Shown here piece after piece: positions 16,337 through 64,000 of a stretch of 64,000 bases of DNA. The DNA lies in the sequence record OR805292.1. One strand, 5' to 3'. Under the pieces are notes generated by a model. It was given only the letters and a program-made list of their open reading frames with translations. It was not told where the DNA came from and made no database searches. Each line of letters opens with the position of its first letter. Position 1 is the first letter of the stretch. The position numbers and the translations under genes are program-made.

Positions 16337-16387
16337 GTTACGCATATAAAGCATTATTACAAAGCTATTATTAGTTGTACAAGATAT

Positions 16388-16464: not shown

Positions 16465-17003
16465 ATTTTAAAGAGTGTTGTGTTATGCAAACAATAAGAT
16501 TTGACATAAGACTTCTTCGTTATAGTATGAAACAAGGTTTCTGTTGTATAGGTAAAGATATATTTGAAGTGTGCAGAAAAACTCGGATCAGTCCAGGTCA
16601 GCTAAACTTACGAAAAAATTATATAGGACGAGTATTAATCGGAATTGATTCGAACTATAATCTGCACAATACCTGTTTAGTAGGCTGGACTCGGTATAAA
16701 AATATTATAGTATAAAAATTTATATTAATAATATGAATAGATGCAAAGAACATCTACAATACAGAACAATCAAAAAGCATACATCGACTTGTAGGAAATG
16801 CAAAGAGTTATCGTTACAAATAAAATTATTTTGGCTTCAACAACAAGCATTCAGTATTAGAACTGATACTAGCGGAATATACATATTCGATATTAAATAT
16901 AATTCTATTTACTTATACTCTGTAGCTTGGTATAATACAGAATTATACGGTAAAGGGAAAATAATTTTAGAATAAACATGTATATATAAGAGTACCTCAA
17001 ATA

Positions 17004-17336
17004 ATGAATAATTATTCTAATGATACAGATGTTCTAAAATGGATAAAGCGTAACAATAGAAAAAATGCACGTCTAATTTCATATATAGACGGAATATATA
17101 ATATTGTTTATTTCGATGCCGGAAAAGCAAGAGTTGGCATAGTAAAAGACAATATGCACTGTAGATACGGAATACATAGTCGTGGATCTATGTATTCGAA
17201 AGATATAATGAGCCTGTGGCAATCTAGTACAGGTTCGTGTTCGCCTGATGATGTAAAGATTATGCAAGATTATCTAGACGATAAATGCATACTTCCGGAA
17301 TTTGATTTTTCTCAGATTAAAAATTTAAAATGGTAA
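17004..17336 (+). CDS. Hypothetical protein within the tRNA cluster
   Basis: 110-aa ORF with protein-like composition directly upstream of a tRNA trio. Confidence 0.7.
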   Translation: MNNYSNDTDVLKWIKRNNRKNARLISYIDGIYNIVYFDAGKARVGIVKDNMHCRYGIHSRGSMYSKDIMSLWQSSTGSCSPDDVKIMQDYLDDKCILPEFDFSQIKNLKW

Positions 17337-17359
17337 ATAATATAACAATATAGTTTTAT

Positions 17360-17436
17360 CGCAGGGTATGCAAGAGGTCTAAGCAGAAAGGCTCATAACC
17401 TTTTTATCGTGGGTTCGAATCCCACCCCTGCAACCA
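17360..17436 (+). tRNA. tRNA-Met(CAT), initiator-like
   Basis: C1:A72 mismatch, CGCAGGG/CCCTGCA acceptor, AAAGG-CTCATAA-CCTTT arm, CCA. Confidence 0.82.
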
Positions 17437-17445
17437 GTTTTATAT

Positions 17446-17522
17446 CTAGGCATAGCTCAAGTAGGTAGAGCACTTGCTTTGGGAGCAAGAGGTTGGGGAT
17501 TCGAGGTCTCCTGCCTAGACCA
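17446..17522 (+). tRNA. tRNA-Pro(TGG)
   Basis: CTTGC-TTTGGGA-GCAAG arm, CCA. Confidence 0.93.
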
Positions 17523-17531
17523 ATTTACTAT

Positions 17532-17604
17532 GCAGTCCTAGCTCAATTGGTAGAGCACTGTCCTTCCAAGTCAGATGTTACGGGTTCGAGTCCCGTGGGC
17601 TGCT
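17532..17604 (+). tRNA. tRNA-Gly(TCC), no encoded CCA
   Basis: CTTCCAA loop, T:T mismatch in anticodon stem, ends T-CAA rather than T-CCA. Confidence 0.85.
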
Positions 17605-18349
17605 CAATATTCTAATATAATTGATTGGTATATCTAATCGATGATTCATGTAGTGGATAAATATGGAAGTATAGTTATACCATCTAATATAACGGTGCTG
17701 GAAATACAGGCATACACAACAGAGTTATTGTATGTAAGAAAATCTCATTGTTTATGTTTATACATTCCTAATATAGGAAATTATGCTTTATGGTTTTTAG
17801 ACAGATAGGATAAAAATATAAATTGTTCTGTTTAAGGAACCAACATTAAATGGCAGGTTGCATATTTAGGCTCGATTTGTCTATTTTTCGTGAAAATGTA
17901 TATAGTATTTCTAGGTTGTCTTATACAAAATCTATATGTGTTTCAATAAAAACTAAACCGACAAGCAATAGAAGACAATTAGAAATATATGTTGTAGATA
18001 AAACAACTGATTTTTTAATTGCATGCAAATATTTTTAGCTTATCTATTATTTTATAAATTGACTTACCTTTAAATAACCATTATATATCTGTTATAATAA
18101 CTATTCTAAATAGAAATAAAACCATAAATACACATAATAACGGTGTGGATTTATGGAAAACATATTTAGGATATCTATTAATGCTAACGAAGGTATTATA
18201 CGAATATCCCCTACTTACTTTTTTAATGGTGTTTTTTATTCAAAGCATTTGAATATTTTTATAATAGATCCCGACGGATATTTAATAAGAAAAATATATA
18301 CTTGTAGTACATTCTTATGATGATTTCTTTTAAATATACAAAATAGCAT

Positions 18350-18378
18350 TTGACACAAGTATAATTATTTCGTATAAT
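18350..18378 (+). promoter_or_regulatory. Consensus sigma70 promoter
   Basis: TTGACA-17-TATAAT upstream of ORF 18410-18769 and two tRNA-Ser genes. Confidence 0.9.
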
Positions 18379-18409
18379 AAGTGTATAAAATAACAAAAGA
18401 GAATTTTAA

Positions 18410-18769
18410 ATGATTTCCAAAATTCAAATTGTATACGGAATATATCTTCCTACTGCCGATGCAAAAATTATATACGAAGACTTGGAATACGAATCTAATA
18501 AAATAAATAAAAATATTAGATTATTTGCAAATGATGCATATTTAGAAGATAAGATTTTAGAAAATAAGGAATTCGAAGATAATCCCTATGTTCCGCACTT
18601 TTATGGTATCTTTTGTAAAGAATTCGATAATGACCAAAGTGCATACTTATATAATGTTCCTAAATCTTTTATAGATGAATATAATAATGTAGCTCCAGCT
18701 ATTTTAGCTAGACTTGGTTATTTAGATAGAGTTGCAGGAAAACAACATTGTAGAATAATTTACGAATAG
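18410..18769 (+). CDS. Hypothetical protein
   Basis: ORF directly behind the consensus promoter. Confidence 0.75.
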   Translation: MISKIQIVYGIYLPTADAKIIYEDLEYESNKINKNIRLFANDAYLEDKILENKEFEDNPYVPHFYGIFCKEFDNDQSAYLYNVPKSFIDEYNNVAPAILARLGYLDRVAGKQHCRIIYE

Positions 18770-18783
18770 AATTAACTAGTTTT

Positions 18784-18873
18784 GGAGAGGTGATAGAGTC
18801 TGGTTTATTATACTAGTCTTGAAAACTAGCGGATCGAAAGGTCCCGTGGGTTCGAATCCCACCCTCTCCGCCA
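18784..18873 (+). tRNA. tRNA-Ser(TGA)
   Basis: CTAGT-CTTGAAA-ACTAG arm, long variable arm, CCA. Confidence 0.96.
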
Positions 18874-18878
18874 AATAT

Positions 18879-18968
18879 AGATACTTGACCGAGTGGCTTA
18901 AGGTGCTTCCCTGCTAAGGAAGTGAGTTTGAAAAAGCTCCGTAGGTTCGAATCCTACAGTATCTGCCA
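18879..18968 (+). tRNA. tRNA-Ser(GCT)
   Basis: CTTCC-CTGCTAA-GGAAG arm, long variable arm, CCA. Confidence 0.96.
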
Positions 18969-42606: not shown

Positions 42607-42705
42607 CTCTTATTCACTTTCTTATTCACTTCTATTTCGTTTATCATTTCCTTATTCATCTCTATTTCATTTATCATTTCCTTATTCATCTCTATTTCAT
42701 TTATT
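42607..42705 (+). repeat. Pyrimidine-rich tandem repeat
   Basis: About 2.5 copies of a 30-mer TCTATTTC(A/G)TTTATCATTTCCTTATTCATC plus CTTATTCACT x2. Confidence 0.88.
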
Positions 42706-42708
42706 ATT

Positions 42709-42826
42709 GCAAATAAGACTAATTCTTATTTGCGTTTGTAATTTCATTTATTATTGCAAATAAGACTAATTCTTATTTGCGTTTGCAACGAAAAAGAATA
42801 TGCAAATAATAACTAATCTTATTTGC
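42709..42826. promoter_or_regulatory. Cluster of three 25-bp GCAAAT-N13-ATTTGC palindromes (Fur-box-like)
   Basis: 42709-42733 and 42756-42780 identical (GCAAATAAGACTAATTCTTATTTGC); 42802-42826 is a variant. Confidence 0.8.
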
Positions 42827-42998
42827 ATTTGCACTGCCTAGTATATGGATTGGTAGCATACTTGGAAATGGATAGTAAATAAGTAGTTGATTTGTTTATA
42901 AATTTTAATTCTACATCGTACTGATTGACCTTGCTATATATAGCTCGCGCGCGTATACAAGATGGTAAAAAATAATTTAAAAATATTTTAAAAAATGC

Positions 42999-43122
42999 TT
43001 GACTTTCCATTACTACGACCTTAAAGTGCGAACTGTAGACGCAGTGTGTAGAGCGCTACATAGTAAGCAACGCAGAAAGTAAACAAAAAATGCTTGACGC
43101 AACGCAAACTAGGCTCTACACT
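42999..43122 (+). promoter_or_regulatory. Tandem sigma70 promoters with A-tract UP elements
   Basis: AAAAAATGC-TTGACT-17-TAAAGT and AAAAAATGC-TTGACG-17-TACACT. Confidence 0.8.
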
Positions 43123-43205
43123 GTATACAAGCTTAAGGGGTAAGTGCCCCGAAAGTGTAGTAAGTAAACAACATAATCCTTCCATCAGCTACAGAGGTAT
43201 ACAAC

Positions 43206-43910
43206 ATGTCCGTACATATCACTCGTCAACGTACCGACAAACAGCACGTCCTGGCACTGGCAATCAACGGCGTGGTCATCGGCCAGACTATGGCTACCTA
43301 CACCACCCCGAGCAAGCGCACCTGGTCAGCGACCGCCGAAGTCGAACTGGCAGACGGCACCGTCGTACAGTTCGAGCAGAAAGAAGTGTTCAGCGCGATC
43401 CGCATCACCCGCGAGATCGAGCAGGCGCTCGACGGCAAGGAACTGGCGGCCAAGTACACCCCGGAACCGAAAGTTCCCGGGCAGAAGGGTCCGAAACCGC
43501 TCACCGACGAAAGCCGACTCAGCAACGCGATCGCGATCGTCAAGGCGGCCATCACCCACACCGGCTTCGACGAAGCTACCCTGGTGTTCGACGGGGTCGA
43601 CAAGGCCAACTTCGAGCAGAACAGCACTTCCGTCGGCAACAAGCTGCGTCGCCTGGGCTTCGTCTTCGAACTCGGCGCCGGCAAGGCGAACAGCGGCAAG
43701 GGCTTCCTGATCAACCGCAAAGCGCAGGCCGAGGCAGAAGCTGCCGAACGCAAGGCCAAGCGCGACGCCGAGAAGAAGGAGCGCGAAGAAAAAGCGGCGG
43801 CTGCCAAGCGCGAAGCTGACGAACGCAAGGCCAAGCGCGACGCCGAACGCGCCGAAAAGGTCGCTGAAAAGAACGCAGCGATCGCCGGGGCGGCGCAGGA
43901 AAGCAAGTAA
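43206..43910 (+). CDS. GC-codon protein with charged Ala/Lys/Glu-rich tail, possible DNA-binding protein; paralogue of 61898-62380
   Basis: GAGGT SD; shared N-domain (NGVVIGQ...VFSAIRI); duplicated ERKAKRDAE. Confidence 0.85.
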   Translation: MSVHITRQRTDKQHVLALAINGVVIGQTMATYTTPSKRTWSATAEVELADGTVVQFEQKEVFSAIRITREIEQALDGKELAAKYTPEPKVPGQKGPKPLTDESRLSNAIAIVKAAITHTGFDEATLVFDGVDKANFEQNSTSVGNKLRRLGFVFELGAGKANSGKGFLINRKAQAEAEAAERKAKRDAEKKEREEKAAAAKREADERKAKRDAERAEKVAEKNAAIAGAAQESK

Positions 43911-43925
43911 TTGCCCAACTGCGCC

Positions 43926-43952
43926 GAAAGGGGAGCAAATTGCTCCCCTTTC
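43926..43952 (+). terminator. GAAAGGGG-type terminator
   Basis: GAAAGGGGAGCAA-a-TTGCTCCCCTTTC. Confidence 0.88.
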
Positions 43953-46869
43953 TTCATGACCATATAATCTATATACTACTGTGTCTTTAACTATATTTTC
44001 TATATCAGCTAGTTTGTATTCAATAACTTGGTATTCTATGCCAGCGACACAATGCTGTTATATAGACATAATAACACGCGACGCTGATATTTTTATAACC
44101 TATCCATTTTATAATAACATACTTGTATCTAAAATTATTTCTAATACAATACCTGTAGGAAGTTATGAACACTATATTAGAGATATGTCGTGGAATAAGA
44201 AATGATTATATAACAGTCAATAATTTTACATATGACTACTATCTAGAGGTAAACACACCTGCGTTTTCTTTAATGATAATTATTCCGACAGTTCCTATAT
44301 TAGACAATACTTGCATTACTTTTATAAAAAAGTATTAATATGAATATATTCTTTATATCAAACGGTCTATCTAATATAATATATCACAAAGATAATTTGA
44401 TACAACATAATATACATATGATAGATATTGAGATTAATAATTCTACTGTTATTTGGCTTACATATTCTTTCAATATTACTAAAGTATCATTTAAATATAT
44501 TATCTAATTCATTTTCTTATTGTACGAATTGCAATTGCAAATTACTCTTATTTGTAATTGCATATAAACAATCAGTTGCTATTAAAAGTATTTGCTGTTA
44601 ATATATTATATAACAGTGCAATTGATATTTTAAAATACAGTGTGCAATGCATCTTACATGTATTAAAATTTGTGTGTTACTTGGTTTGCATTAATGATTA
44701 ATATACCTCTCTTACAGTACAAAACTAATACTATAGACAATTTGTTCGGGGGATCGTTCTCGAAAAGTATACAAGTGAGAGATAACAGTCTAATTATACT
44801 TGTTAGTTTTTATATAGAAGGTTCTAAATATAGAAAATTTGTATACAACAAAGAATACCTCGAAGGGATTTCAGCATATGCAAACAACAATCGTTAATGC
44901 CCTAAAATCTATTAATGTAAAGTATTCGGATATATTTTACACAAATGGTAATTTGTGTAATACTGTTACAATACGAAATATTCGCAAAAACGGTAAATTA
45001 GATTCGGCAGAACAAATTAATGTTGAATCAGTTGTGAGCAATTATTTGATTCAAAAAGATTTAAATTTGCCCTTTTCTATTCAATGGGCAAATAATGCTT
45101 GCTGTGAAGAGTATACTACACTTATTCTCTTCTTCAGAAAATAGTGTATGATTAGATTAAAAAGATATGTTCAATTGCATAGCATATACAGATTGTCTTA
45201 CTATGCGCACGGCATACATTTTAGCAAAACAAAGAAGATAATGCTTTACGTAGGAAACGCAGGTCCCGTACCCGTAACATGACAGTATATAGCGTTAAAA
45301 TGTGCATTTTTTGCACGATTTTGCGGGGTATGCGTTACAAGCAATACACACATACTGCTTTTAAAATGCATGCTTACATGCGCTTTGTAGGGGGTTTAAA
45401 ACATGCTTAAATTAGTTACCACTGTGCTATACAACGTCTGTGTAGCTTCGTTGATAATGATTGTGTTTGTATGTGGTATAAATTTAGTAATGTATATAGA
45501 TAACAATACTGACAATAATCCAGTTGTTATCTTTATTTCCCTTCTATCGGTTATTTGGGGCGTTGCGCGGATAAGCTATATGTTTGTTACTATCCAATTT
45601 CAGTCCAAGAAATAAAAGTATTGGTAACATATGATAGATAAAAACGGAAATACAGAAGACTTTGATTTTGATAAGGCATGCACTATAACTGATCTGTCTG
45701 TTCCTCTTCAGCAAAAAATACAATCATATAAATTAAATAAAATATTGGTTATGGTTGCAATCCTTAAATATTCGAATATAAAACAAGAAATTGGATGTTT
45801 CGCTATCATATGGGATCATATAATAAAAATAACAGTTGAAGTAAAATGCAATCCGTATGCAGAAACACACATACTCATGCATGCGCATGTATTTTCTAAT
45901 TCCGATTCATGTACTCATAGTGTATTGCTGAATTACAGAAACAAATATTTACCCACTAATTATTATAATTAATATGGAAGATATTCTTAAAATTGCTAAA
46001 CTAATCGGGTACGTAAACATACATGCAAATAAACATTTTCAGTATGTTTTTAACAAAGATATGGAACATGTATGTGTTAGTGCCAAGACTAGGACAAGTA
46101 TGAACGGAATAAAATACCTTTATGTAGTAATGAATATATATTATATATATTGCCATCAAGAAAGTGTTGCCGTTATATTAAACGAAGTAAACACTGATGA
46201 AATGCCTGTATTAGATAATCTTTATGCTAAACTTAATGATTTAGTTACACATAAATCTGTTATAAAATTTAAATATACAGAAATAACACAAGAACAAATA
46301 GATTTGTTGAATAATAGTGAAAGATATATAGTATATTTTGACTCTAATTTAGAATACGGAATAGCTTCGTTTTATTAATTTTGAGGAATATATGAAAAAA
46401 CAAACAGGTTTTACAGATTGGCCATTGATTAGTTTAGGTACAATTATTATCTTGTGTGTATGGGTATTAATTCTACAATATACAGAAATAAATGTACTAG
46501 AAGAAAAATGTAACAAAGTAGGTGGTATTTTTAATAACACCGTTTGCATACGGTCAGATGCAGTTATTAATTTAGATAAGGTAAAATAAAATGCCAAAAC
46601 TTTACGTTAACAAAAAACATGATACCATTTATCTTCAGTTAGATCATTTCTCATCTAATACTGTATCTCCAATTAATTACAACGAAGATGTAGAATATGT
46701 AATTGATAGGATCCGTAGTCTGCACAAATCCGGCTTCGGATTTAGTCATATGAATACTCTACAAGAATATCTTACGGCAAGAACAGAACAGGATAAGAAG
46801 TTTAAGCTTAAAGTAGAAGACTTCGAAGTAGTATCATTTAAGATTTAAAATTATACATAATCAAAGTAT

Positions 46870-48900: not shown

Positions 48901-48910
48901 TGCATATTTA

Positions 48911-48976
48911 GAAAGGGAATTATAATTCCCTTTCTTTTTGGATCTATATTAGCAAATGCTAATTAATCTTATTTGC
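48911..48976 (+). promoter_or_regulatory. Terminator plus 25-bp palindrome junction
   Basis: GAAAGGGAATT-ata-ATTCCCTTTC then GCAAATGCTAATTAATCTTATTTGC (48952-48976). Confidence 0.8.
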
Positions 48977-49612
48977 ACAAATTTAATCCTATTGTGTTTT
49001 CTATTTTGAAGTGCTACATTACATGTAGTTGCATAAAACTATACACAGGAGAAATGATATGTGGGATATCAAAGACGGGGATGATATCGAAGTCGAAGCA
49101 GTTATGGATGAACGAAGCTATGAGTGGACCGGCAAGTTACGTATCATCCAATATCGGACCCTTCAATCAGCTCAGTGGCGTGTTATTATCAATATAGTAG
49201 AATTTTGGAGTCATTCTACTGAAAGTATACTGAACGAACTTGGTATAGAAGCTAAACACATCACTAAAGGATATGCCACACTTAGCATGGTTCGTTTCCC
49301 GGAGGTTGATTACCTATTTAGTGTAACACCCGATAATGCAGATTATGTAACTGTTAACCACAGTGCAGTAGACATTACTGACAGTTGGTTTGTTGCAAAA
49401 AACATAAAAGCAGTTATGTATCATATGGGATCTGAAATCCAGATCACTCCGTGGTTTGTGCGTAAAGATAGTGGCGAGTCAAATTTCAATTGTATTGATC
49501 GATTAGTAGCTCTAGTGAAAGAGAATACTGATGTCGACACGTATCAGTACATCAAGATAGGTTGTCCTGAGGACAAGTCATTTTACTTTGCGTGGATAGA
49601 CAAATAATTCGT

Positions 49613-49649
49613 TTGCTATACGTACTAATACGTTGTATACTGTTAGTAC
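49613..49649 (+). promoter_or_regulatory. sigma70 promoter of the GC island, overlapped by an inverted repeat
   Basis: TTGCTA-17-TATACT with CGTACTAA-N-TTAGTACG spanning the spacer and -10. Confidence 0.7.
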
Positions 49650-51734
49650 GCATAGTAGAAGTAACACATAACGTTTTGATTTAATGGAGTTCTAACATGA
49701 AAAAAGAATTTGAATCGTGGATTCGGACTCGTTCTCCGGCGCCGCTTGCATATAATGCAGCCGACGACTTGTACCTCAACCCGCATGTTCAGGCACGCTA
49801 CGAAGCCTGGAAAGCCAGTCGTATGGCACTAAGGGTAGTGTTGCCGAAATCTCACATGGCGTCGGAATACGCGCCCAAAACAAAAGTTTTCAATACAACC
49901 GATATGGAACTGGCCCTCCAAGAAGCCGGCATCGAAGTGTCGCTATGAAGACGTTTTTGAAGATGCTCGCATATTGCGTGCTTGGGACATCAATTGGCAT
50001 TGCCATAAGCCAATGGTTCGTCTTCGTCCTAGAGATGAGGCTTGGCACCGCGCTCTGGTACATCGTTGGCCTTGGTCCTGTGCTGCTTGTGTTTTGCATT
50101 TTGGGCAGCTTCCTTCACTGGCTGATTCATAAGCACTTAGAGAAAAAGTAATGACCGGAATTGAGGTAGTGAAATGAGCAGACTAACAGCCGAGCAAGCC
50201 CGTGACATAGCGCGAGCGAAAGACGATGTCGATGCCATCCTTAACGACATCGCCAAAGCAGCAGCAGAAGGAAAGTACGTGTACACTACCCGCGCCTATG
50301 GGTTCGGCATCGGCACCTCGCGGCGCAGCGAAGCGATCCTCAAAGTGTTGCGTAGCCTCGGCTACGACTGTGCGGTGCATGCTGAGGGACGCCAGTCTGT
50401 TGACCTGTGGCTTGAAGTGAAATGGGGAGACAAGCCATGACTAACAACCCCGGAGATTCAAAAATGATCGTAGAAAACACCAAGCAAGCCGCCGAAGACT
50501 TCAAAACTTCCATGGCTAAGATTTTTCCGAATTACATCGCCGCCGCGTCGGTTTCCGATAACCTTGGTCCGTCGATGACAATTTCGTTTGCGAATGTCGG
50601 TTGCGCTTCCGAAGCCCCGAACAGCATTCTGATGAATGCGAGCGGTTACATGCGCTTTATGATGCATTTGTGTGACAATCGCGGGAATGTATTGCCGGAA
50701 GGTTCGCCGGTCGAAATTGAGCTGCTAACGTGGTCTATCCCCTATCGTTCGGAAGTGATCAAGTTCCGCAAGATCAAGGGCAAGACACCAGCCGAAGCTA
50801 TGCAAAAGCTAGTCAAGTGGTTTGAAAAAAACGCCGAAGCTATCCGGGGTCTGTAATGGTCTCCACGTAGGACACGCAGAATGAACATTGTGTTGGACAA
50901 ATTGCTGTTTGGCGGTTTCATCGACCAGCACCGCAATGAACTTGCCCAGCAACAACTGAATCGGTTGTTTGCCAAGTACGGTGAGCCGAAGATTGGTATC
51001 ACACGGGCATGCTTTCTATCTAAGCATTACGTCCTGAAGTTCCCGATTAATGACAGGGGTGAGCGGTGCAACGATTGGGAAGGTAGCTGTTCTGGCAGCT
51101 ACTTGGCACGCGGACGCTGGCTAGAAATCGGAGGCTTCATTTGCGTCATGCAAGAGCGTTTGGTTGAAGTGGATTGGAAGAACAACACCTGTGCAAACTT
51201 TCCTGATTGGGTAGGCAGCATAGATTGTGGTCAAGTCGGCTACGATAAACATGGCGTTCTGAAAGCGTATGACTTTGGGTGAAGCATGACCATCAATTTG
51301 TTTGTTGTCAACACAAAGAACGAACCTATCCCAACCGACCACAGGTCGATACTCCGCTATCTTGGCCTTAGCCTGCACACGCAAGGCTGTCGCGTATCTG
51401 CCAAATTCAGCAGCGGTAAGTTGAAGCTGAACAACTACAACATCGAATTTTTTCACATGGCGGACGAGAACGATGAACTTCGCCGCCTTTGCTCCTGCGC
51501 TAAGCAATATAACCTCAGCATGACACTGCAAGCGAAGGAGGAGATCACATGATCTGTGTAATCGCTCTAGTCCTTGCCTTCTCTGGTCATCCCGGGCTGG
51601 CCATTTACGCCTGCCTAATCGCTTACATTTTGGGTGACTAACATGCGCATCGTCAGCACTCCACTTCGCAAAAGCGCCCGTAATTGTGAACACGCCCTTG
51701 CAAAGGCTATTACCGAAATGGCGGAGATGATTCC

Positions 51735-52049
51735 ATGACCGACACCAACAAAATAAAAAAGCTAGCAAAACTGGCTACGCCGGGTCCGTGGTATGCGACC
51801 TGGGAGGAAGGCGATGACATTGCATGGTCGAATCTGTTTCCTGTAATCCAAGCGGACAATGGCGAAGTCGTGATCGGTAACGAAGGCTTTTACAGCGATT
51901 TGGAGCAGGACAAGGCTAACGCCACTTTCTGTGCTGCCGCCAACCCCCGAGCCGTCCTCGACTTGCTAGACGAGATCGACAAACTCAAGGCAGAGAACGA
52001 GTCGCTGCGCGAGTCTGTCGATCGACTTGCCGAGATGCTGCGATCTTAA
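51735..52049 (+). CDS. Ead/Ea22-like protein
   Basis: KLAKLATPGPW ... NATFCAAANPRAVLDLLDEI. Confidence 0.75.
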   Translation: MTDTNKIKKLAKLATPGPWYATWEEGDDIAWSNLFPVIQADNGEVVIGNEGFYSDLEQDKANATFCAAANPRAVLDLLDEIDKLKAENESLRESVDRLAEMLRS

Positions 52050-52073
52050 CGAAATCCTCAAAGGAGCTACCAA

Positions 52074-52301
52074 ATGATCGACATCAACAAAATGAAGAAG
52101 CTAGCGGAACAGGCTCTCGATTGTAAATTTGATAGCTATGTGGCGTTAATAGCATCAGCAAAACCACAAGAAATTCTCAGTCTTATAGCTGAGCTGGAAC
52201 AGCTAAAGGCAGAGAATGCCAGAATGCGAGCAGCACTACAGGCTGTTGAATCGGAGCTCACCCATATGACATCTACGAACAACCCGACTGGGAAACAATA
52301 A
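52074..52301 (+). CDS. Ead/Ea22-like short paralogue
   Basis: MIDINKMKKLAEQA ... ASAKPQEILSLIAELEQLKAEN. Confidence 0.6.
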   Translation: MIDINKMKKLAEQALDCKFDSYVALIASAKPQEILSLIAELEQLKAENARMRAALQAVESELTHMTSTNNPTGKQ

Positions 52302-52826
52302 ATCAGCTTTATAAGAATGCAAAGAAATAATTGAAGTAAAGCGAGAGAATTATCATTATGATCCTACCAGAAGGAGCAGCATAAATGAGCCTCAAATATA
52401 ACGGATATGTCTTTAACATCGGTATCCATGGTCAAAACGAAGCTATTAGTGAATACGCCTATCCCACTGATGATCCCGAAAGTGATAAAAAGAAAGCTTT
52501 TTTGGCTGCAATGACAAAATTCGTCGAATCAGATGATTTCGAGAAATTTACTAATCAAATGTATAACAATTTCTCGATTAATGTTCAAGCACTAGTTTCT
52601 ACGTCTACAGAGTAAATTTTCAGTATTGATGCCGATATAGACTATTTCAGTTTCTTGTATCAGCATCAATATTGCAGAAAATAAAGAATAATTAATTCCA
52701 GTTCTTTGTTCCTGCATTAAATGATAATAAAGAAGGCATGACTACTTTGTCTTTGATGCTAAGTAGTAATTATCTTATGATAACTACAAGCATATCGACT
52801 AGCTATTATAATAAAGGCAAAAATAA

Positions 52827-53244: not shown

Positions 53245-54896
53245 ATGAAAAGTTACGCAAAGTTTTATGTAGGGACAAACATTTATGATGCCGAAGTACC
53301 GGATTTAGACATAAACATGCCAGATGCAGAACTTTTCGAAGTAGCATTGCATCAAATGGCAGTACAGTGGTCTAGCACTGCCGGGCATCCGCATCACAAG
53401 GATGCAATGCGTAAAGACGGAAAAGTAGCCCGGAGTAAAGAACGGGTGTATATTCGCGGCAACGGCTGGTCAATTTCGTTGCATAGTCCCGAATTTGTAG
53501 AAAAACATTCGGCATACCTTGCCGCAGCAGAATGGAAACTACTAACAGATTTGCTTGTATTTGACACCTGCTGGAACGCTAGTTAGTAATTCTCTCTACA
53601 CAGGAGAACGGTAATGAATGATATCAGTGTAAGAAATATGCGTTATATTGTACGTGGTTTTGTTACTCATGCAATTGCCCAGGGTTATTCAGTTTCCGTT
53701 TATGAAGGGGGCGATTGGGCGATCGAGAAGAGTACTTCTGTAAAAGATATTATGAATTCTATCATGTCCACCGACAGCGATACATTCTGTATCTATAATG
53801 CAGAGAAGGTGAAGGTAGGTCATGTGTATTGCATTTATTGCAATAGTGATTACGAAGTTATTGCAGATTATACCGATTCACCTCTTATGCAATCGATTCT
53901 CGTTGAAGCTCTACGCAGAGCAAATCGAATAGAAGAACTGAGCTGAGAAAAAGAAGCAGGAATTATTCCTGCTTCTTTTGTATGTTACAAGTTAAACAAG
54001 ATTATTTTGCATTTGCTATGTAATAATATTTTCTATTGAATTAAATATTATATGTGTTACTATATGCACAGTGCTGTTAAACAAAGCGATAAATTAATAG
54101 CTATGGCAAATAAATTACATATCATCTGTGCAAAATGTGGTAGCACTCTTATAAACATAAAAATACCAAAAGTATGTGCAGATGATCCATTAAATGTAGT
54201 ATATTTTTCGTGCGAAAACTGTAAGGAACTTACAGGCATATACGAATGGGCAGAAACAAATAATCGCAAAGTAGTTGACGATAGGTAAGAAGTAAATGGA
54301 AGCATATACAGATTGCCCTATCCTACTGATCGGTGATGCTCCGCACGAAGAAGCACCTATAAGAAAAATAATTATAAAAGGTTATGATTTTAAATATATC
54401 TGGGCAGTATACTATTATATGGATTTAATTCCTATACGGGTTCAGATAAAACGCTGTTATGTGTACGAAACTCCAGGTAGAGTAGGTCATGTAAAATCTA
54501 TTAGAGAAGAAGTATTAAGAAAACGCAAAAAGAAACAACGTGACATATGTGAATACGATACATATCAAGATGAAGACGATTTTTGGAAAGGAATGTATTA
54601 AAATGCATAATACTCGTATTGTTGTTCGACTCAATGTTATCACTCCTATTTCAACTGCCAATGGCGTTGTAGTTGATTCAGTAGTCCGCGGGCATCGAGC
54701 AGGCATTAAGCAAGGCAAACAAATGTATCATGTTTATTCTATTCAAACAGGCGAGTATCTCGGTTTGAAATCAGAAGACGACGTAAGCGAAATTAAACCG
54801 TCTTCGTATGAAGAATTTCTTACTCCGAGAACAATTACTTCAACCGAAGTAGAACAAATTAAATCTTCTTTCGAATGGTACGAAGCTAACGTTTGA
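53245..54896 (+). other. Hypothetical cassette ORFs (53245-53586, 53614-53946, 54052-54288 Zn ribbon, 54296-54601, about 54603-54896)
   Basis: SD-preceded ORFs; terminators at about 53947-53978 and 54900-54925. Confidence 0.7.
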
Positions 54897-55131
54897 TATA
54901 AAGGGGGAATAATTCCCCCTTTATTTTTCTTTTATAAACATAAATAATTCGCATTTGCACCGAAGATGCTTTATAACGCATAAATTTACATAGCTAATAC
55001 ATACATATTGCTAACGTTAAAAAGCGCGTTATATAGCTTATAATTGCATATTGTGCAATGCATTTGTTGGTGTTATATTAAACATGCGCAACAATCAACT
55101 ATACAAAAACATTTATTATGGAGATACAACA

Positions 55132-55829: not shown

Positions 55830-56349
55830 TTTACAGCATGCATAGTTTTACGTATTATAAACACACAAAGCAATACAGCATAACGCATTGTAAGCAACAC
55901 TAAACGGGAGACACCGTCCCGCAAGCAGCCCGCCCGCGATGTTCGCGGGCTGCGGCAAACAGGTGTACAAGGTCTAGTAACGTGGAAGGCGCAGCATACC
56001 TTTCCCTAAATCGGAAATTGGTCAATGACGTACCTGCCCCTGGACACTGCTAGACCTTGCTGCTACAAGCGGGACAGCTACAAAGGTACACTGTATGTAT
56101 CTATGCTTTACCCCGCTTTGTAGCAGGTCTTAAAAACGGTCTACTGGCATATGCTTTAGTGCTAGTAGGAATCATTAACCTACAACTATTATATGCTTCC
56201 TGGAGGTGAAGAGTATGCCGCCGCAGCATTAAATATACATTATGATGATGATAATTATGAATGCCGAAACACCGCTTCGATTCGTTTAAAAGACAGATGT
56301 CTGAATCGAATGTTTTTGGGCAAAAAGGTCCCTTAGATGGGATTTTTTT
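55830..56349 (+). ncRNA. Candidate ~485-nt structured RNA including its promoter and terminator
   Basis: TTTACA-17-TATTAT (55830-55858); helices GTCCCGC/GCGGGAC, GCAGCCCGC/GCGGGCTGC, CAAGGTCTAG/CTAGACCTTG, GCTACAAAG/CTTTGTAGC; hairpin plus T7 at 56328-56349. Confidence 0.65.
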
Positions 56350-56363
56350 GCGGCTGCTAACTA

Positions 56364-56436
56364 GCAAACGCGAATTAATCTTATTTGCAATTTAAGAAAA
56401 ATACCAGTTGACTGTAGCTTGCTAACATAGTACATT
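56364..56436 (+). promoter_or_regulatory. 25-bp palindrome followed by a sigma70 promoter
   Basis: GCAAACGCGAATTAATCTTATTTGC (56364-56388), then TTGACT-17-TACATT (56408-56436). Confidence 0.8.
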
Positions 56437-56465: not shown

Positions 56466-58924
56466 ATGTCGCTGAAAAAGAAACTTTTAAATTCTGTGCA
56501 GATTAAATATTTCGGCAACATTTATACTTACATTTATGATGCCGTTTATGACGTTATTTATTTTGATAACCAGCAAATGTCTTATGCCGAATTTGAAGAG
56601 GCAGTAGACTGTAAGCTAGGAGAAGTTCTGTGAATGAATATGTTGATACACACAGAGCTAAAAGAATATTAATAATTTCTTCTATATGTTTTTTTGTAAC
56701 TGGCATTCTGATAGGATACAGCCTGGCGTCTAACTCTGAGTCTGCTTCGTTATATATGCAGTATAAAGAACTTGTAAAGTCTTGCGAAGCAGAATTGCCA
56801 AGAAATGAAAATTGCCAAGTAATCGTATATGCTATACCAACACCTGAAGTAGAAGAAGAGAAACTAGAAATACAAACAATTCTCAGAGGGGTCGAAATAA
56901 AATGAGCGTATACTGTAATTGCATAGCATGCGGTGGAGATGATCCGTATGCTGTATGTGAAAATGTGTTAATGGATATCCAAAAGCACAAATATAATACT
57001 GGTCCCAGCTGGGGGCTGGTAGTTGCGGCAGTATTGTGTTTGGTAGGAATGGGATTAGCAGGTAACGCAGCACTATCTGATAAAAAAGAAACACCATGCG
57101 AAACTACACAACAAAAATAAGAGGTGTATAATGACTGACAAAACAACAGACATGTTGGTAGATGAATTTCTGTGCGAGCGTGCATCTTTTTCTCCGTTTA
57201 GCGAAGGTGTTCATGCAGCTAAACTAGGGCAGAAATATACAGACTGCCCGTATACCAAAAATGAGCCGTATGAACGTAACGAATGGATTCGAGGACATCA
57301 AATGTGGCATGATTATTCTGTTCAACAATACAAATAATATTCAGAGGATATTATGAAGAAACTATCTATGTGCGATTTTGCCAAATGGAAGGCAAACTAT
57401 TACAGCACCAATAAATCCGGTCAGCCACTCCGTCTAGGACAAGCATTTATTAACGAATTTTCCGAACAGGGTGATATGCCTCAGCCAAATCTATATTATG
57501 AAGAAGACAATGCAACTGCTGAGCTTATCATTCTAGAAAAATACATTATATACTAAGGAAGTAGTAATGTATCTTGCACACCTATTCGCTTTGGTCCCGT
57601 CTATGTTTGCAGTATTAATTAATGCTGTCTTTATCAAATACGGTTTGGGACCTGCTGCTATAATAGTATTTATGGCATTAGTTGTAACTGTAACAGGAAT
57701 TGGGTCTGTAATAGATATGATGCGTGCATTGTCTGAAGTAGACAATATTATTGATAGATAGTATTTATGTATGCATAAGAGAACTTATGAAACTCAATGA
57801 AGTTACTACAATTTCTGATCTAGACAATATTCCTGTCACTGACAAATTTATAGTTGTCGGCGAAGATATGGTAGGTCTTGCTTTTATCGATAACGATGGA
57901 AAGCTAAATGATGGATTCTTTTTTGAGTGTACTTATACTCAGAATAAGGAACAAATATTTAAAGCTGTTCAACATTTAAAAAAACAAGTAGATGAATTAA
58001 ATAATTGTAATAAAGAGAAAGTTATAGCACATGTCATGCGAGCTCCCGAGTTTGCATATGTTTGGGTATATTTTGAACAAAAACAATAGTTCTATATTTT
58101 TGATATATGCAAACGCAAATAATTAGAATTTGCAGAATCTGTTACAAACTTTCTGTTTATATCAAATACAATCATGCTATAATAGTTTATAATAAAAATG
58201 TAAGCATACTATCATTGACAGAACTGCTGTTCCAATTAGTAAAGGGTTTCATTGAGCAGCATGACATCCGTGCCTACAGCAAGCACCAAAAGAACAAAAA
58301 TGAAGTTCATTCTTTGTCTAAAGATTAAGTTTGCTGAGAAATTTGATAAGAAACTTCAACTGCTTGATTATATCAATAGTGCATTTATCATGCATTGAAC
58401 AGAAACGAAGTACTCTTTTATCTACGAGGAAAAGCAAATGAAATACAAAATCATTCTTCAAAACCGTAGCAATGGTGTTGTCGCTGAATTTTCGGTAGAT
58501 AACGAAATCAATCCCGAGATCATGGATACTTCTATTATCGTTCATGAAGGGACGTCGTATATGTATACCGGCTCGGGTGGTTCTTACTACGATACCATTT
58601 ATTTTAGTGAAATATATAAGACCATTAACACGACAGACTTGTCGTTGCTATAACAGAAAACGCTTTACAATAGCTCTAAATGTGCTATTATGTAGTTGTA
58701 CATAAAACAACGCAGGAGATTATATCATGCGTAGCACACTCGGAGTAGAACATGCATCGAGAGAAATTCTTTCTGCATGGGTTGATGTAATGCAGCAACT
58801 CAACTGTGAGCATTTCTATAGCGAACTGAAAGACAATGCAGTTCGCTTAGATTTACAGGAATATATGTATACTGAACGTCTTGTTCAGTATTATACAGAT
58901 CTTCCAGTCACTAATGCTGTTTGA
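56466..58924 (+). other. Operon of small hypothetical ORFs, several membrane-associated; includes untracked 56466-56633
   Basis: AGGAG/GAGGT SDs, chained ORFs, terminator at 58956. Confidence 0.7.
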
Positions 58925-58955
58925 CAGCCACGCTGGGCGTGAACTACATTTATTA

Positions 58956-59020
58956 GGAAAGGGGTTTTAAGCCCCTTTCCTTTTGAATGTTAAGTGTAAG
59001 TGCAAATTAATCTTATTTGC
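58956..59020 (+). promoter_or_regulatory. Terminator plus 25-bp palindrome junction
   Basis: GGAAAGGGG-ttttaag-CCCCTTTCC then GTAAGTGCAAATTAATCTTATTTGC. Confidence 0.8.
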
Positions 59021-59103
59021 TTGTTACAATTTAGTTCTTGAATTCACACATAATAGTATGTATAGTTTTAATATATAAGATACCAACATGCGAGGTTGTA
59101 AAA

Positions 59104-60525
59104 ATGAAACTTCATAATATGAATGGTAATATTTTTATTCGGTTTGAAGTAGATACTTCGTCGGATAATTTTGTAGAAAAAGTTTACGAAGAAATTATGC
59201 AGCTTCCTGCAAAATTGTATTTCGAAAAGATAGAACGTAGAACTTGGTTCTGTAGCTTTTACACAGGCTACGACGAATTGGTGGAATTCGTCAATGAAAT
59301 AAAAGACAGAGTTAGTTCAGAAGGTGTTTTCTTTGACAGGCCATTGCAGCTAACTCTTATCAATTCGGGCGGGGTAGAAGTAAATATTTCCGATATAGAA
59401 CCGGATCTTCACTATCTCTTTGATAACGATATTACAACTACAAAACTTATCTCTATGGAAGGATCCTGCAATATGGTAGATTTGCTCATGTGCGAATGGG
59501 TACCTATTAGCATTCGAACTTCTATTGCTAAGGCATTTACTGACAAATTTTTATAATAAAATACCTGTTGACGCATATAGCAATATGCGCAATAATATGC
59601 ACGAAAGCAAGAACAGATCCAAATAACCTTTTTATAAGAGATTATATTATGTCTAAGTATCTTTCTTTTAGCGTAAACGTAGACATGGACAACACTGGTT
59701 TGTTGAAATGGTTGCGTCCTACCACCGGTCGGCTGGATGGTTTTGAAGAGAGTGTTAAAAACTTCGTTTCTTCTTTCCGCTCAGTCGAGTCGAGCCCTAC
59801 GGTGTTTCAAGTTTACGATGATGATAACCAGCCGTTGCAAGTAAGCAACATGAGCTGCTTCTTCCGGTACTTTCCGGTGTATGGTATGTGCCTTGCACCG
59901 GGTTCGATGGTCAGGGAACAATATCGTCGGGAGATCCTCGACTATACTACTGACGAGTTCTGTTCATTCAGTAACTACTTCAGTGACGGCAAGGCCATCC
60001 GCGGCGGGGCAGTATTGTGGTGGGATGTAGAGAAAGACTTGGTATGGTCTGTTAGTCCCGAATTGATTCGCCTCGTATATGCCCGCTTGCAAAGCGATCT
60101 GGACATCGGGTGGTATCATCTCGGGCAAGAAGTTATGGCTGTAGTTCCTCTTCGTTCGTATCCCAACGATGTTGCCAGATGGAAATATGTACAAGGTAAT
60201 ATCTGCGGCATCGACGATCAAGTGAGCATTCGCAGCAACGTCGACGGTCGAGTCACCCGGCTTAATTGGGAATACATCGTGACCCAAGGGGGATAATATG
60301 GGCGGTCTTGCTAATATAGTTGCATGCATAGCTTCTATTGTTGCAATTGTTACTGGAAATATCTGGTATTTTATCGCACTGTTGCTATGCACAGCATTTA
60401 TGTCGCCCGAACGAAAAGGATCATTAATTGATGTATTTTCGGTCATTGTCGGGATTGGTGCTATATTTAACGGAGACATTGCATGGGGCATAGTGTTCAT
60501 AGCATTAGTGATAATAGTTAAATAG
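59104..60525 (+). other. Hypothetical ORFs (59104-59556, 59649-60296, 60298-60525 membrane protein)
   Basis: Starts moved to SD-preceded ATGs; terminator at about 60526-60555. Confidence 0.7.
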
Positions 60526-61310
60526 AAAGGAAGGGGGTTAAACCCCTTCCTTTTATTGTAGGTGTTAAATGTCATCAATTTTTTATCTTAGCAAATGGAC
60601 AGAATACATAGTAATTTTAAACAATAAGAGAATAAGGTTAAGTACAGCGAAATATTCTATAGGATATGTATCACTAGAAACACCTCGTCGCACATTTTAC
60701 TGGACACTTTTTAAATGAAATACAATAATCATATCTAAGTAGATACCTACCTTTATATCAAAAACCATTTTATGAAATATATTTCCTAAATCATATTACA
60801 AAAGTTATATTTGAATTTTGGATTCTTATCTCAACCTTGCATTGCAATATAAAATGCGAATATGAGTGTGCTATATGTATTTGCATATGCATGTACATAC
60901 GTATAAACGTATTAAGAAATACAATTTATTTTATCCTATACAATTATCTTTAATACCTATATGTTGTTTGATAATAAAAGTATAATAAGTAAAAGATATT
61001 ATCCATTATATAATGGTTTTAATATATTTCGCTGTAGTGTTGGATTTATATATTTTTCATATGATAAAATGTCATTTATTCACGACATATTCATGCAAAC
61101 CGTTTCGTTGTTCCTTACGACGTTATTATTGTTTTTACTTATAACTCCGTTATATTATATAGGATTGAAAAATCCAGTCAATATAACTACATTTGTTTCG
61201 TGTTTAATAATAACCATTCTTATAACAAGTTATTATTTTATGTCAGTTTTGACTTATATATTCTGTATTACTGTTCAGTCAAAAATTTATAAAAGAAAGA
61301 AATAATTTAG

Positions 61311-61418
61311 TTTCAATATCTTTTTCTTTTTCAATATCTTTTTCTTTTTCAATATCTTTTTCTTTTTCAATATCTTTTTCTTTTTCAATATCTTTTTCTT
61401 TTTCAATATCTTTTTCTT
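61311..61418 (+). repeat. Six perfect copies of an 18-bp pyrimidine-rich unit
   Basis: (TTTCAATATCTTTTTCTT)6. Confidence 0.95.
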
Positions 61419-61438
61419 TATCTTTTATCATTGCAAAT

Positions 61439-61549
61439 ACAAATAATAATTATTCTTATTTGCATTTAGTGATGTAAATAATTCTTATTTGTAATTGCGA
61501 TTAATTCTTATTTGCTACAATAGATAGAATAAGAATAATTCACATTTGC
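61439..61549. promoter_or_regulatory. Cluster of three to four Fur-box-like palindromes
   Basis: ACAAATAATAATTATTCTTATTTGC (61439-61463), GTAATTGCGATTAATTCTTATTTGC (61491-61515), TAGAATAAGAATAATTCACATTTGC (61525-61549). Confidence 0.75.
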
Positions 61550-61897
61550 AATGCCGCTAAAAGCGCTGTAAGCGCTGTATGCTGTGTAGTAGTGCTAAGC
61601 AATGCATTAGTACAGCTACGCGCACAAACGCTGTTATAAGCGCTTGTAGCGCGTTTTAGGGCCCATGCGCATGCGTATACCTGTAGCTTTACATAGTAAA
61701 ATGCAGAAAAGACGTCGTCTATTAACGTGCCTGTCTTAATAGAAATATACAATTGTACAATACCAGCGAAATCCTACACACTACAGACATGCAAACAAGC
61801 AACGCGCTTGCAAGCATAAAAGTTTTTAAAAAGTAGTAGACACAGTGTAGCATCCCTAGTAAGCTACACACATAAACAACACAACGGAGTACAAGCT

Positions 61898-62380
61898 ATG
61901 TCTAATGTAAGCATCCCTGCTGTAACGGTAGAGAACATCGGCACCCTGCGCATCGTGCGCACCGCTAACAAAGAGGTCGGAAGTGTGCTCGACCTAAAAG
62001 TTAACGGGGTAGTAGTAGGGCAAGCTTTCCCGCTCTACAGCACAAAAACCCAGCGTAGCTGGAACGCGAGCATGCACGCTACCGTTAACGGCGTAGAGGT
62101 GCAGTTTGCACAGGAAGGCGTGTTCAGTGCAATCCGCATTGCACGGGCGTTCGAGGATGCAGTAAAGCATGCCGTTAGCAACGGCGAACAAGGGCAACCC
62201 CTCCCCGCGCCGGCGGCGGCAGAAGCGCAAGCAGAAGCGCAAGCAGAAGCGCAAGCAGAAGCCCCGGTAGCGCAGACCGAGGATGCGCCGGAGACCCCGG
62301 CAGCCGAAGCTAAGCCCGCCCGCAAAGGCGGCAGCAAAGGCGGCAGCAAAGGCGGCAGCAAAGGCGGCAGCAAAAAGTAA
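61898..62380 (+). CDS. GC-codon protein with (AEAQ)n and (KGGS)4 tail; paralogue of 43206-43910
   Basis: GGAG SD; NGVVVGQ...VFSAIRI shared domain. Confidence 0.85.
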   Translation: MSNVSIPAVTVENIGTLRIVRTANKEVGSVLDLKVNGVVVGQAFPLYSTKTQRSWNASMHATVNGVEVQFAQEGVFSAIRIARAFEDAVKHAVSNGEQGQPLPAPAAAEAQAEAQAEAQAEAPVAQTEDAPETPAAEAKPARKGGSKGGSKGGSKGGSKK

Positions 62381-62395
62381 GCGCTGCTAACACAG

Positions 62396-63385
62396 GAAAG
62401 GGGCAACTGCCCCTTTCCTTTTATGTCCTAGTTGTAAACGCAAATTAATCTTATTTGCATTTGCACAAGTCAATCTCCGGTTGCATTACTGCGGTAAGAT
62501 GTTAGTATATATGTAGCTATACGGAGTAATTGCTATGAAGCGCAAGTACCTAAAGGCACAGTTCGAGCATGTCAGTGCCGGGCGAGTTGCAAAAGAACTC
62601 GACGAGAAGTTCAATTTCGTTGTAGGCGATAATGTACACTACTGGGCCATCTTCGAAACTAATGTCAAACCCGAAGTTCTACAAAAGGCAATTCATGACA
62701 TGAACGGTGGTGCTTACTGCCATGCATATTCTATTCCGTATGAGGATGTAGAGGAGTATCTCTAATGCTCTACTATCGCGATGTTTATGCAGGTGTTTGC
62801 TGTTAAACTTGTATAGCCGGCACCAGGTCGCATATAACACGCCTAGCCCCATGCAAACTGCGGACATGATCCATTCACGCCTGCAGCGTATGTTCGAAGA
62901 ATTCGGTTGCAAGCCCGATGGTTGCTCTGCTAGCATGTACGAGGATAAGACGCACATTACACTAGCCTGGAGCAAGTAAATGGATATGTCGATTGTGAAC
63001 AAGCGCTTCGAGAAAGAACTAGCGCTGTTTAATGTCGAAGTTCTCAGTAAGCGCACAGTGAATCATATAACGAAACCGAACATCGAAGTTTCGTTCAAAC
63101 TAAAGGGTCATACTACTGAAGAAGAGATGACCACTGTTACTCAGCTCGCACGTCCCATTATGGAGTATGTAAGCGGACGTAGGGTGGTCTGGGCACATAC
63201 CGGTCTTTGGCGCTCAATGAAAGACGACCTCGAAGTAGCAGTGCTGACAATGAAGTTATCCAAACAATAAGAGAAAGGGGCAACTGCCCCTTTCCTTTTA
63301 TGTCCTAGTTGTAAACGCAAATTAATCTTATTTGCATTTGCACAAGTCAATCTCCTGTTGCATTACTGCGATAAGATGTTAGTAT
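62396..63385 (+). repeat. 113-bp direct repeat (62396-62508 and 63273-63385): terminator, palindrome, promoter
   Basis: 111/113 identical by manual alignment; period 877 bp. Confidence 0.95.
62535..63270 (+). other. Gene cassette between the 113-bp repeats (62535-62765, about 62765-62979, 62980-63270)
   Basis: GGAG SD and chained short ORFs. Confidence 0.7.
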
Positions 63386-63425
63386 GTGCTTGGCAGTAAC
63401 ACATAACTAGCAGGAGCAACAGACA

Positions 63426-63674
63426 ATGGCTAAAGTATTGCACGTTAACAGCATCGGCAACGTCGCCGAAGTGTTTACATCTGTAGACCTCGACAGCGCC
63501 TTGTTGCACGCAATCAAGCGCTGTGCAATGATGGGCAAGGTTAAGGTTGTCGGTCCCAACGCTCCCGTGTTTGCTAGCCACTACTACGCACTGAGAGCGT
63601 ACGACGTGCAGTGGCGCCTCGTTCCACCGGGCTGCGACGTTACTTTGTACGTCATCGCCGAGGACAACAACTAA
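63426..63674 (+). CDS. Hypothetical protein
   Basis: AGGAG SD behind the repeat-borne promoter. Confidence 0.75.
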   Translation: MAKVLHVNSIGNVAEVFTSVDLDSALLHAIKRCAMMGKVKVVGPNAPVFASHYYALRAYDVQWRLVPPGCDVTLYVIAEDNN

Positions 63675-63685
63675 GGAGAGACACC

Positions 63686-63988
63686 ATGAATCTCGTTCAT
63701 CTGTGGATCAACGGGCGTGTTGTGACTGCCCGCAAGGTTGTCAGTAAGCATACTGTCCGCAATCCGAACAGTCCGATCGATATCGAGACTATCGACGTTG
63801 TTCGACTGCGTCTGCCCCGCGGTGTGCGTGCTAGCAGTTGGGCACTCCGTAAGGCAGTGTACCAGCTCATGGAGCAAAGCTGTAGCTGCTCGAGAGACTG
63901 TTGTGGACACTGGTTCGGCGGCGCACGCAAGATCTACATTAAAGGCAGAGACGTCAGTGTAGTTGCCGGGTACCAGCGCAATTACTAA
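63686..63988 (+). CDS. Hypothetical protein with CSCSRDCCGH metal-binding motif
   Basis: AAGGAG SD; start moved to MNLVHLW; GAAAGGGG terminator begins at the window end. Confidence 0.75.
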   Translation: MNLVHLWINGRVVTARKVVSKHTVRNPNSPIDIETIDVVRLRLPRGVRASSWALRKAVYQLMEQSCSCSRDCCGHWFGGARKIYIKGRDVSVVAGYQRNY

Positions 63989-64000
63989 AGGAAAGGGGGC

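Follow-up and report, generated by a model that had tools for sequence, protein, structure and literature searches.

Results

The window analysed here, a stretch of 64,000 nucleotides (nt), matches, with 100% identity, Pseudomonas phage Cassandra (OR805292.1), a PA5oct-like jumbo phage of 288 kb that its record places in Wroclawvirus, Arenbergviridae. Window position 1 is record position 124001, the whole window covers record positions 124001-188000, and its last part, 58000-64000, is record 182000-188000. Near the right end lies a direct repeat of 113 nt, whose copies (62396-62508 and 63273-63385, plus strand, located with a repeat finder) are identical at 111 of 113 positions (98%) and stand 877 nt apart from start to start. 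Each copy is a junction that runs from a predicted transcription terminator through an imperfect palindrome, here called motif M, to the -10 box of a predicted promoter. The initial annotation had described a 113-bp repeat with these three elements around an 877-bp cassette; the repeat finder and a reading of the sequence both confirmed it.

In the left copy, an intrinsic-terminator-like hairpin with a T run (62394-62423, plus strand) has an 11-bp stem with seven G-C pairs (62394-62419), the loop AACT and an energy of about -20 kcal/mol. It is followed by the 27-nt motif M, TGTAAACGCAAATTAATCTTATTTGCA (62433-62459, plus strand), whose centre lies about 69 nt upstream of the predicted transcription start, and by a predicted sigma-70-type early promoter (62481-62508, plus strand), read in the sequence as TTGCAT (62481-62486), a 16-nt spacer and TAGTAT (62503-62508); the right copy has this promoter sequence too. 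The repeat starts at the foot of the hairpin and stops on the last base of the -10 hexamer. What sets the two copies apart is therefore the transcribed part that follows, with its 5' untranslated region (UTR) and genes. Among relatives, the junction copies are about as polymorphic as the backbone.

The gene upstream of the left copy (61898-62380, plus strand) encodes 160 amino acids (aa) and is a homologue of PA5oct gp86, with an N-terminal domain of beta-sheet and helix and a low-complexity tail of AEAQ and GGSK, and the junction hairpin follows 13 nt after its stop codon. Between the two copies is the body of an exchangeable unit with its own 5' UTR (62509-63272, plus strand), present in six of ten genomes and absent from four. 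Three plus-strand open reading frames (ORFs) of the unit, all of them ORFans, encode 76 aa (62535-62765), 60 aa (62797-62979, the remnant of a 93-aa gene) and 96 aa (62980-63270). The right copy leads into a following unit (63386-63989, plus strand) made up of a 5' UTR and ORFs of 82 aa (63426-63674) and 100 aa (63686-63988), which in relatives without the cassette comes directly after the 160-aa gene. The window closes at 63990-64000 (plus strand) on the start of another terminator hairpin, as had been claimed at the outset; the public record completes this hairpin as GGAAAGGGGGCAGTTGCCCCTTTCC with a T run, and the junction of terminator, M and promoter runs on to about record position 188094.

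A scan of 80 kb out of the 288-kb genome revealed about 11 composite junctions, in which 6-19 nt separate the end of the terminator from M, and 12-20 nt the end of M from the -35 box. The hairpins have energies of -13 to -20 kcal/mol, each with a T run, while the putative promoters at the other junctions match the consensus at 7-10 of 12 positions and, as far as the sequence tells, keep a fixed distance from M. Diverged junctions on the plus strand lie at 58956-59066 (hairpin GGAAAGGGG, M, TTGAAT-17-TATAGT), 56328-56436 (hairpin, M, TTGACT-17-TACATT), 54898-55009 (hairpin AAAGGGGG, a weak M and a weak promoter) and 48910-49020 (GAAAGGG hairpin, M, TTGTGT-17-TACATT). A weaker one at 53947-54060 has another hairpin stem and a degenerate M, and further junctions past the window end lie at 63990, 65273, 65697 and 70609. 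The initial annotation had given the same order of elements at 48911, 53947, 54900 and 58956, with GAAAGGG(G) stems shared among the terminators. The order holds at 48910, 54898 and 58956, and at 56328 in addition, and the shared stem holds in general; at 53947 the junction is weaker and the stem differs. The pattern AAAGGGG-N3-8-CCCCTTT occurs three times in the window against 0 expected, and terminator-like sites number 37 against 12.8 +/- 3.6 in shuffles. The promoters and terminators of the junctions are predicted to be active in transcription.

The consensus of M is TGCAAATGC.AATTA(T/A)TCTTATTTGCA, and its core, TCTTATTTGCA, is found nine times in the window with 0.12 expected; like the hairpin and terminator counts, this number lies well above chance. 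A position-weight scan of the same 80 kb located 23 copies of M, all within 42.7-70.7 kb and none in window 1-42.7 kb, mostly oriented along the direction of transcription. The homologous stretch of PA5oct lies inside a 39-kb direct terminal repeat, whose small genes, about 105 in number, show high transcription 5 min post infection, nearly all of it from the plus strand (PMC7318152). Rifampicin, which inhibits host RNA polymerase, abolishes the production of PA5oct, and host RNA polymerase is therefore used (PMC7318152). Since the homologous region of PA5oct is transcribed early and depends on host RNA polymerase, the Cassandra junctions fall in an early, host-takeover region.

Cassandra has ten public relatives, with identities of 95-98%. 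The comparison drew on 30-40 kb of homologous sequence from Paride, PA5oct, PAC2, Ettore, Deifobo, Callisto and MIJ3 and on the relevant ends of phages 30-2 and 30-3, and structural differences were mapped by unique-k-mer anchors and ungapped extension; chained gapped BLAST hits are misleading at the repeats. The 877-bp unit is complete in PAC2, Ettore and Callisto, and carries an identical internal deletion of 298 nt in Deifobo and 30-2; Paride, PA5oct, MIJ3 and 30-3 lack it and have a single junction copy each. In the genomes without the unit, the left and right alignments, anchored on unique k-mers, overlap by exactly 113 nt, the signature of a repeat-bounded indel. The single copies are not all alike: at a near-diagnostic site PA5oct has the left-copy allele, and Paride, MIJ3 and 30-3 have the right-copy allele.

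Two more units, just past the window end, break at junctions. Callisto lacks 739 nt (64020-64760); on its left side this gap breaks after the terminator tail, and on its right side within an M core. The resulting hybrid junction has a spacer of the 113-nt type, and the M-like core at 64760 was read by eye. A unit of 461 nt (65279-65740) stands in Cassandra between direct repeats of about 75 nt, composed of terminator and M, and is swapped in six genomes for 74 unrelated nt; the hairpin stem and the M core hold the breakpoints. The 877-bp and 461-nt units occur in all four combinations of presence and absence, which requires recombination between the units or recurrent events. The expectation that an alignment of relatives would place breakpoints inside the junction repeats was borne out for three units; the position within the junction varies, from the terminator stem and the M core to 10 nt after M.

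The interior of the 877-bp unit is uniform within diverged surroundings. Its identity to Cassandra is 100% in PAC2, 99.5% in Ettore and 99.7% in Callisto, against 92.8-96.8% for the left flanking gene and 94.7%, 95.3% and 70.7%, respectively, for the right one. Cassandra and PAC2 show no differences in 764 nt of unit interior and 52 in 798 nt of the two flanking genes (Fisher p = 3e-16), and the mismatch-free tract between them, 62474-63282, has both ends within junction copies. In metagenome contigs from sludge, biofilm and gut, the unit appears as separate pieces of 854-907 nt with ends inside the repeats, and these differ at 0-7 positions in about 900 nt, compared with about 2% in the neighbouring backbone. 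A recent transfer through crossovers in the junctions would yield such uniformity, and the best explanation is that the 877-bp unit is a recent insertion that spread laterally among Wroclawvirus by crossovers in both junction copies. Apparent back-joining contig joints and loose ends were considered as circles and rejected, as they represent paralogous junctions elsewhere in the genome that map on M or the terminator. A homologue of the 96-aa cassette protein, 73% identical, is encoded on metagenome contigs of a more distant relative.

The order of units is permuted in two metagenome contigs, L024 and L025. With protein lengths in brackets and J for a junction, Cassandra reads [160] J [76-60-96] J [82-100], L025 reads [157] J [82-100] J [76-84-93-96], and L024 reads [159] J [82-100] J [148] J [84-93-96] J [154]. 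The proteins of the two contigs are 73-88% identical to those of Cassandra, and both the three-part junctions and the unit-specific 5' UTRs are kept. No exact run above about 15 nt is common to the junction copies of L025, and two assemblies of different samples concur; a misjoin at a repeat is therefore an unlikely source of this order. Set against L025, the Cassandra unit no longer has the 84-aa gene and retains only half of the 93-aa gene. Wroclawviruses without the cassette show the order [160] J [82-100] as well, which points to an insertion as the origin of the Cassandra arrangement.

Breakpoint statistics were drawn from the 27 kb that bear M and from indels and replacements of at least 50 nt (n = 18). 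M-bearing junctions contain six of the 36 breakpoints, with 2.6 expected. Both breakpoints fall in junctions in two or three of the 18 events, with 0.09 expected (p ~0.004), the third event hinging on the M-like core at 64760. A second class of breakpoint, independent of the junctions, is seen in a GC-rich hypervariable operon at 49715-52821, where alleles are swapped, inserted and deleted at the boundaries of ribosome-binding sites (RBS) and start codons with 5-12 nt shared. A comparable exchange affects the 82-aa gene (63430-63685): in Callisto and one gut-metagenome contig a 70%-identical or unrelated allele is found instead, and the breakpoints of the swap are exactly its own start codon and that of the next gene.

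The palindrome that had been noted in the junction is imperfect: M has 7-nt inverted ends, TGCAAAT/ATTTGCA, around a conserved centre that is asymmetric. M is most simply read as the site of a dimeric early-promoter regulator, which would bind some 69 nt upstream of where transcription is predicted to start. Any such role is putative, and the operator of the initial annotation is a label only. As a promoter in itself M did not fit in an informal comparison, and neither did the consensus sequences of IHF, Fis, Vfr and PsrA or the T4 MotA box, compared just as informally. A scan of IMG/VR with the M core gave single chance matches only.

M also occurs apart from terminators. Four copies in both orientations are clustered at 61430-61553, upstream of the 160-aa gene and with no terminator; three more, in a 47-nt tandem, are clustered at 42694-42833, upstream of a paralogue of that gene (43206-43910); and a single M without a terminator at 68993 (L001 24990-25080) stands before a third paralogue (L001 25189-25644). 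The three proteins encoded next to M at 43206-43910, 61898-62380 and L001 25189-25644 share the N-terminal domain of beta-sheet and helix and a charged low-complexity tail. An AlphaFold2 model of the family shows an N-terminal domain of five strands and a helix, with a predicted local distance difference test score (pLDDT) of about 80-87 over residues 17-93. The family has no sequence match to solved structures and no Atlas lead of at least 0.9, and the model of the domain matched no known fold (Foldseek E above 0.7; VIA Z at most 4.3). The family having no known fold, its link to M is a lead only. Between the last AT-rich unit and the M cluster, at window 61311-61419, lies a perfect tandem repeat of 18 nt in six copies, the number of which varies among relatives and metagenome contigs.

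Pfam and PHROGs gave no match for five of the six ORFs examined at the cassette locus, and most ORFs of the region have no family match. A tblastn search of the cassette genes against phages found Wroclawvirus genomes only, a scan of IMG/VR with the 96-aa cassette protein found no match, and a metagenome scan with a 22-nt junction string returned one contig, which was unrelated. Between window 61500 and 63500 the records of Cassandra, Ettore and Deifobo were deposited with ORFs called on the minus strand; the plus-strand ORFs are conserved at the protein level in distant relatives and are annotated in PA5oct, PAC2 and Callisto.

Several other features of the region deserve mention. A second repeated type of promoter and 5' UTR occurs at L001 28120-29290 and consists of AAAGGTTGACG, 17 nt and CATAATA, followed by ACAACACAGC...GCCC.GGAGG. 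It precedes GC-rich units and is also found at indel breakpoints, for example at a 323-nt insertion with a 7-nt overlap, GCCCCGG. Islands of 50-56% G+C lie at window 43000-44000, 49000-52400 and 61900-64000 in a genome of about 30% G+C; parts of them share 78-92% identity with temperate Pseudomonas phages, and an Ead/Ea22-like ORF is present, which suggests genes gained from other Pseudomonas phages. Twelve tRNA genes, all on the plus strand, are clustered at window 14736-18965. An early ORF of 68 aa (window 57131-57337, plus strand) has a weak Pfam match to RMF, the ribosome modulation factor (24.4 bits, under the cut-off of 27.9; E = 3e-5), of note since the PA5oct-like phage group kills dormant cells. 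A variable tandem array of GTCTATAGGTTC... units at L001 30370-30522 (record ~198370-198520) coincides in position with the right end of the annotated PA5oct terminal repeat (39080).

Discussion

The junctions of Cassandra are probably composite regulatory modules of an early region transcribed by host RNA polymerase, and homologous recombination between them probably moves whole units. In such a scheme the terminator would close one short unit, M would serve as an upstream element, and the sigma-70-type promoter would open the next. Similar sequence of 40-113 nt is common to the junctions, and because of it general homologous recombination could delete, insert or reposition units, be it inside a single genome or between relatives in a co-infection. 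A moved unit would stay functional because it is always placed between a promoter and a terminator. On the left the unit would begin with the base that follows the -10 box, and on the right its boundary would be the terminator, so that the 5' UTR would move along with the genes. Selection would then retain the products in which each unit has a promoter before it and a terminator behind it. We infer homologous recombination as the enzymology, with circles as possible intermediates. The initial suggestion that the junctions act as recombination landing pads at which cassettes are added, deleted or reordered is supported by the different content of relatives, the 113-nt overlap and the permuted order.

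Several observations weigh against this interpretation. The functions of promoter, terminator and M are read from sequence alone and from published expression at the level of the region, and an RNA-seq contig (Logan, PA5oct-like run) spans the single junction at flat depth, which would reflect either read-through or DNA carry-over. Two of the junction events rest on shared blocks just 9-14 nt long. Across the ten close genomes the 877-bp unit is found at one place, and at another junction only in distant metagenomic relatives. About 14 of the 18 indels and replacements break outside junctions, at RBS or start codons or within genes, with microhomology of 0-12 nt; the junctions can therefore not count as the principal route of change. 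They are a preferred route, and one breakpoint class among several.

The position of the unit and the many breaks elsewhere are also what can be said for a narrower account, by which the repeats are purely regulatory and alike by selection or descent, the 877-bp polymorphism is one accidental deletion, and the junctions have no wider role in plasticity. The conserved spacing of M, -35 box and -10 box would then reflect functional constraint. This account is unlikely, however, in the face of three separate units with junction breakpoints and of two adjacent units in four combinations. It is further opposed by the low divergence of the unit relative to its flanks, with an identity tract that ends in the repeats, by the permuted order in L024 and L025, and by the single copies themselves, which carry the left-copy allele in PA5oct and the right-copy allele in Paride, MIJ3 and 30-3. 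An artefact of assembly or annotation, with a junction and unit duplicated by misassembly at the repeat, is hardly credible. Contigs of the short-read graph do break at the repeat, and the linear record of phage 30-2 (LC727697.1) has both its start and its end inside M of the right copy, which a break of the assembly graph at the repeat would produce. The same arrangement nevertheless recurs in six isolates that were sequenced independently and come from Switzerland, Spain, Thailand and Japan, as well as in three metagenomes. For the permuted order, the junction copies of L025 have no long exact run at which to misjoin, and two assemblies agree.

The conservation of M raises the question of site-specific recombination, in which a dedicated recombinase or nuclease, of the phage or of the host, would recognise M much as an attC site is recognised, and cassettes would move through M as circles. 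M is an imperfect palindrome that is conserved better than its surroundings and present at every junction, the right breakpoint falls at the start of the M core in two events, and M clusters adjoin a paralogous gene family. Yet no integrase, recombinase or homing-endonuclease family or domain was found among the 70 plus-strand ORFs of the region, and the protein encoded beside the M clusters has no recognisable fold. Breakpoints keep no fixed position in M, the left end of the PAC2 identity tract lies 14 nt past M and its right end short of M, and M stands at a fixed distance from the -35 box, like the site of a transcription factor. We consider this explanation very unlikely. Also very unlikely is a combined role, in which M would be the target of a phage protein, for example of the 160-aa paralogues, that both controls early promoters and stimulates breakage and exchange at junctions. 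If true, the region would be a genuine system of cassette exchange, based on a recombination factor of a new kind.

Recombination between composite junctions, the interpretation we favour, has a close parallel in the promoter-early stem-loops (PeSLs) of T4-like phages, repeated motifs of stem-loop and early promoter in hyperplastic regions (Arbiol et al. 2010, PMC2839356; Comeau et al. 2014, PMC4122927). PeSLs are implicated in indels, replacements and the displacement of ORFs, and both mini-circles and reporter activity have been shown for them (PMC2839356, PMC4122927). Like PeSLs, the Cassandra junctions combine a terminator stem-loop with a predicted sigma-70-like early promoter, exist in many copies concentrated in a plastic region of small ORFans, and stand at the breakpoints of indels, replacements and displacements between close relatives. 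Moved units would likewise remain expressed, and no dedicated recombinase would be involved. The Cassandra stem matches the nt-1/KVP40 consensus of A3-4 G3, loop, C3 T3-4 (PMC4122927).

The differences are as clear. Cassandra belongs to Wroclawvirus (Arenbergviridae), only distantly linked to the T4-like phages, and its junctions lie within the region that forms the 39-kb terminal repeat in PA5oct. Between terminator and promoter it has the conserved 27-nt M, also found in promoter-less clusters, where PeSLs have an AT-rich tract only. At the sequence level a promoter, a stem-loop, dispersed copies in an ORFan-rich region and breakpoints in the motif between relatives are all present, as in PeSLs; the host genome is not that of a T4-like myovirus, and the element is therefore PeSL-type and not a strict PeSL. 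We found no description of the junctions or of M in the papers on PA5oct, MIJ3 and Paride, nor did the literature searched apply the PeSL concept beyond the T4-like phages. With their three parts, the Cassandra junctions are a system of PeSL type in a new phage family, and the concept itself has been known since 2010.

Other known systems resemble the Cassandra region in part. Integrons consist of an intI integrase, an attI site and attC sites cut at a fixed position, and their promoterless cassettes are expressed from a common Pc promoter. Arrays of small exchangeable units whose junctions carry an imperfect palindrome are common to both, but the Cassandra region has no intI, attI or common Pc, each unit has a promoter and terminator, breakpoints are variable, and exchange is best explained by homology. 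The comparison to an integron without an integrase, made in the initial annotation, thus captures the exchangeable units and the missing integrase and fails on the promoter that each unit possesses and on the absence of a fixed cut site. Lambdoid and other temperate phages undergo mosaic exchange at gene boundaries. The block at 49.7-52.8 kb resembles them in swapping alleles at RBS and start-codon boundaries with few shared bases, and parts of it are 84-92% identical to temperate Pseudomonas phages; such exchange makes no use of terminator-M-promoter junctions, with which it coexists in the Cassandra region. In T4-like phages, seg and mob homing endonucleases drive gene mobility. The presence/absence polymorphism of small optional genes in close relatives is similar, but no endonuclease domain was found in or near the Cassandra units, and the polymorphism is bounded by long direct repeats.

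The Cassandra junctions extend modular shuffling of the PeSL type past the T4-like phages to a jumbo-phage family that is under therapeutic development and stands out by its killing of dormant Pseudomonas (PMC10761892). The population-level evidence is unusually clean, with an indel bounded by homology, an identity tract whose ends fall in the repeats and a permuted order. In practice, the junctions flag a repeat that breaks short-read assemblies, mark natural insertion points for adding or removing a self-expressed gene, and predict early accessory genes that differ between near-identical therapeutic isolates. M itself appears to be an undescribed, sharply conserved early-promoter element of this phage group, and may offer a handle on the control of its early transcription.

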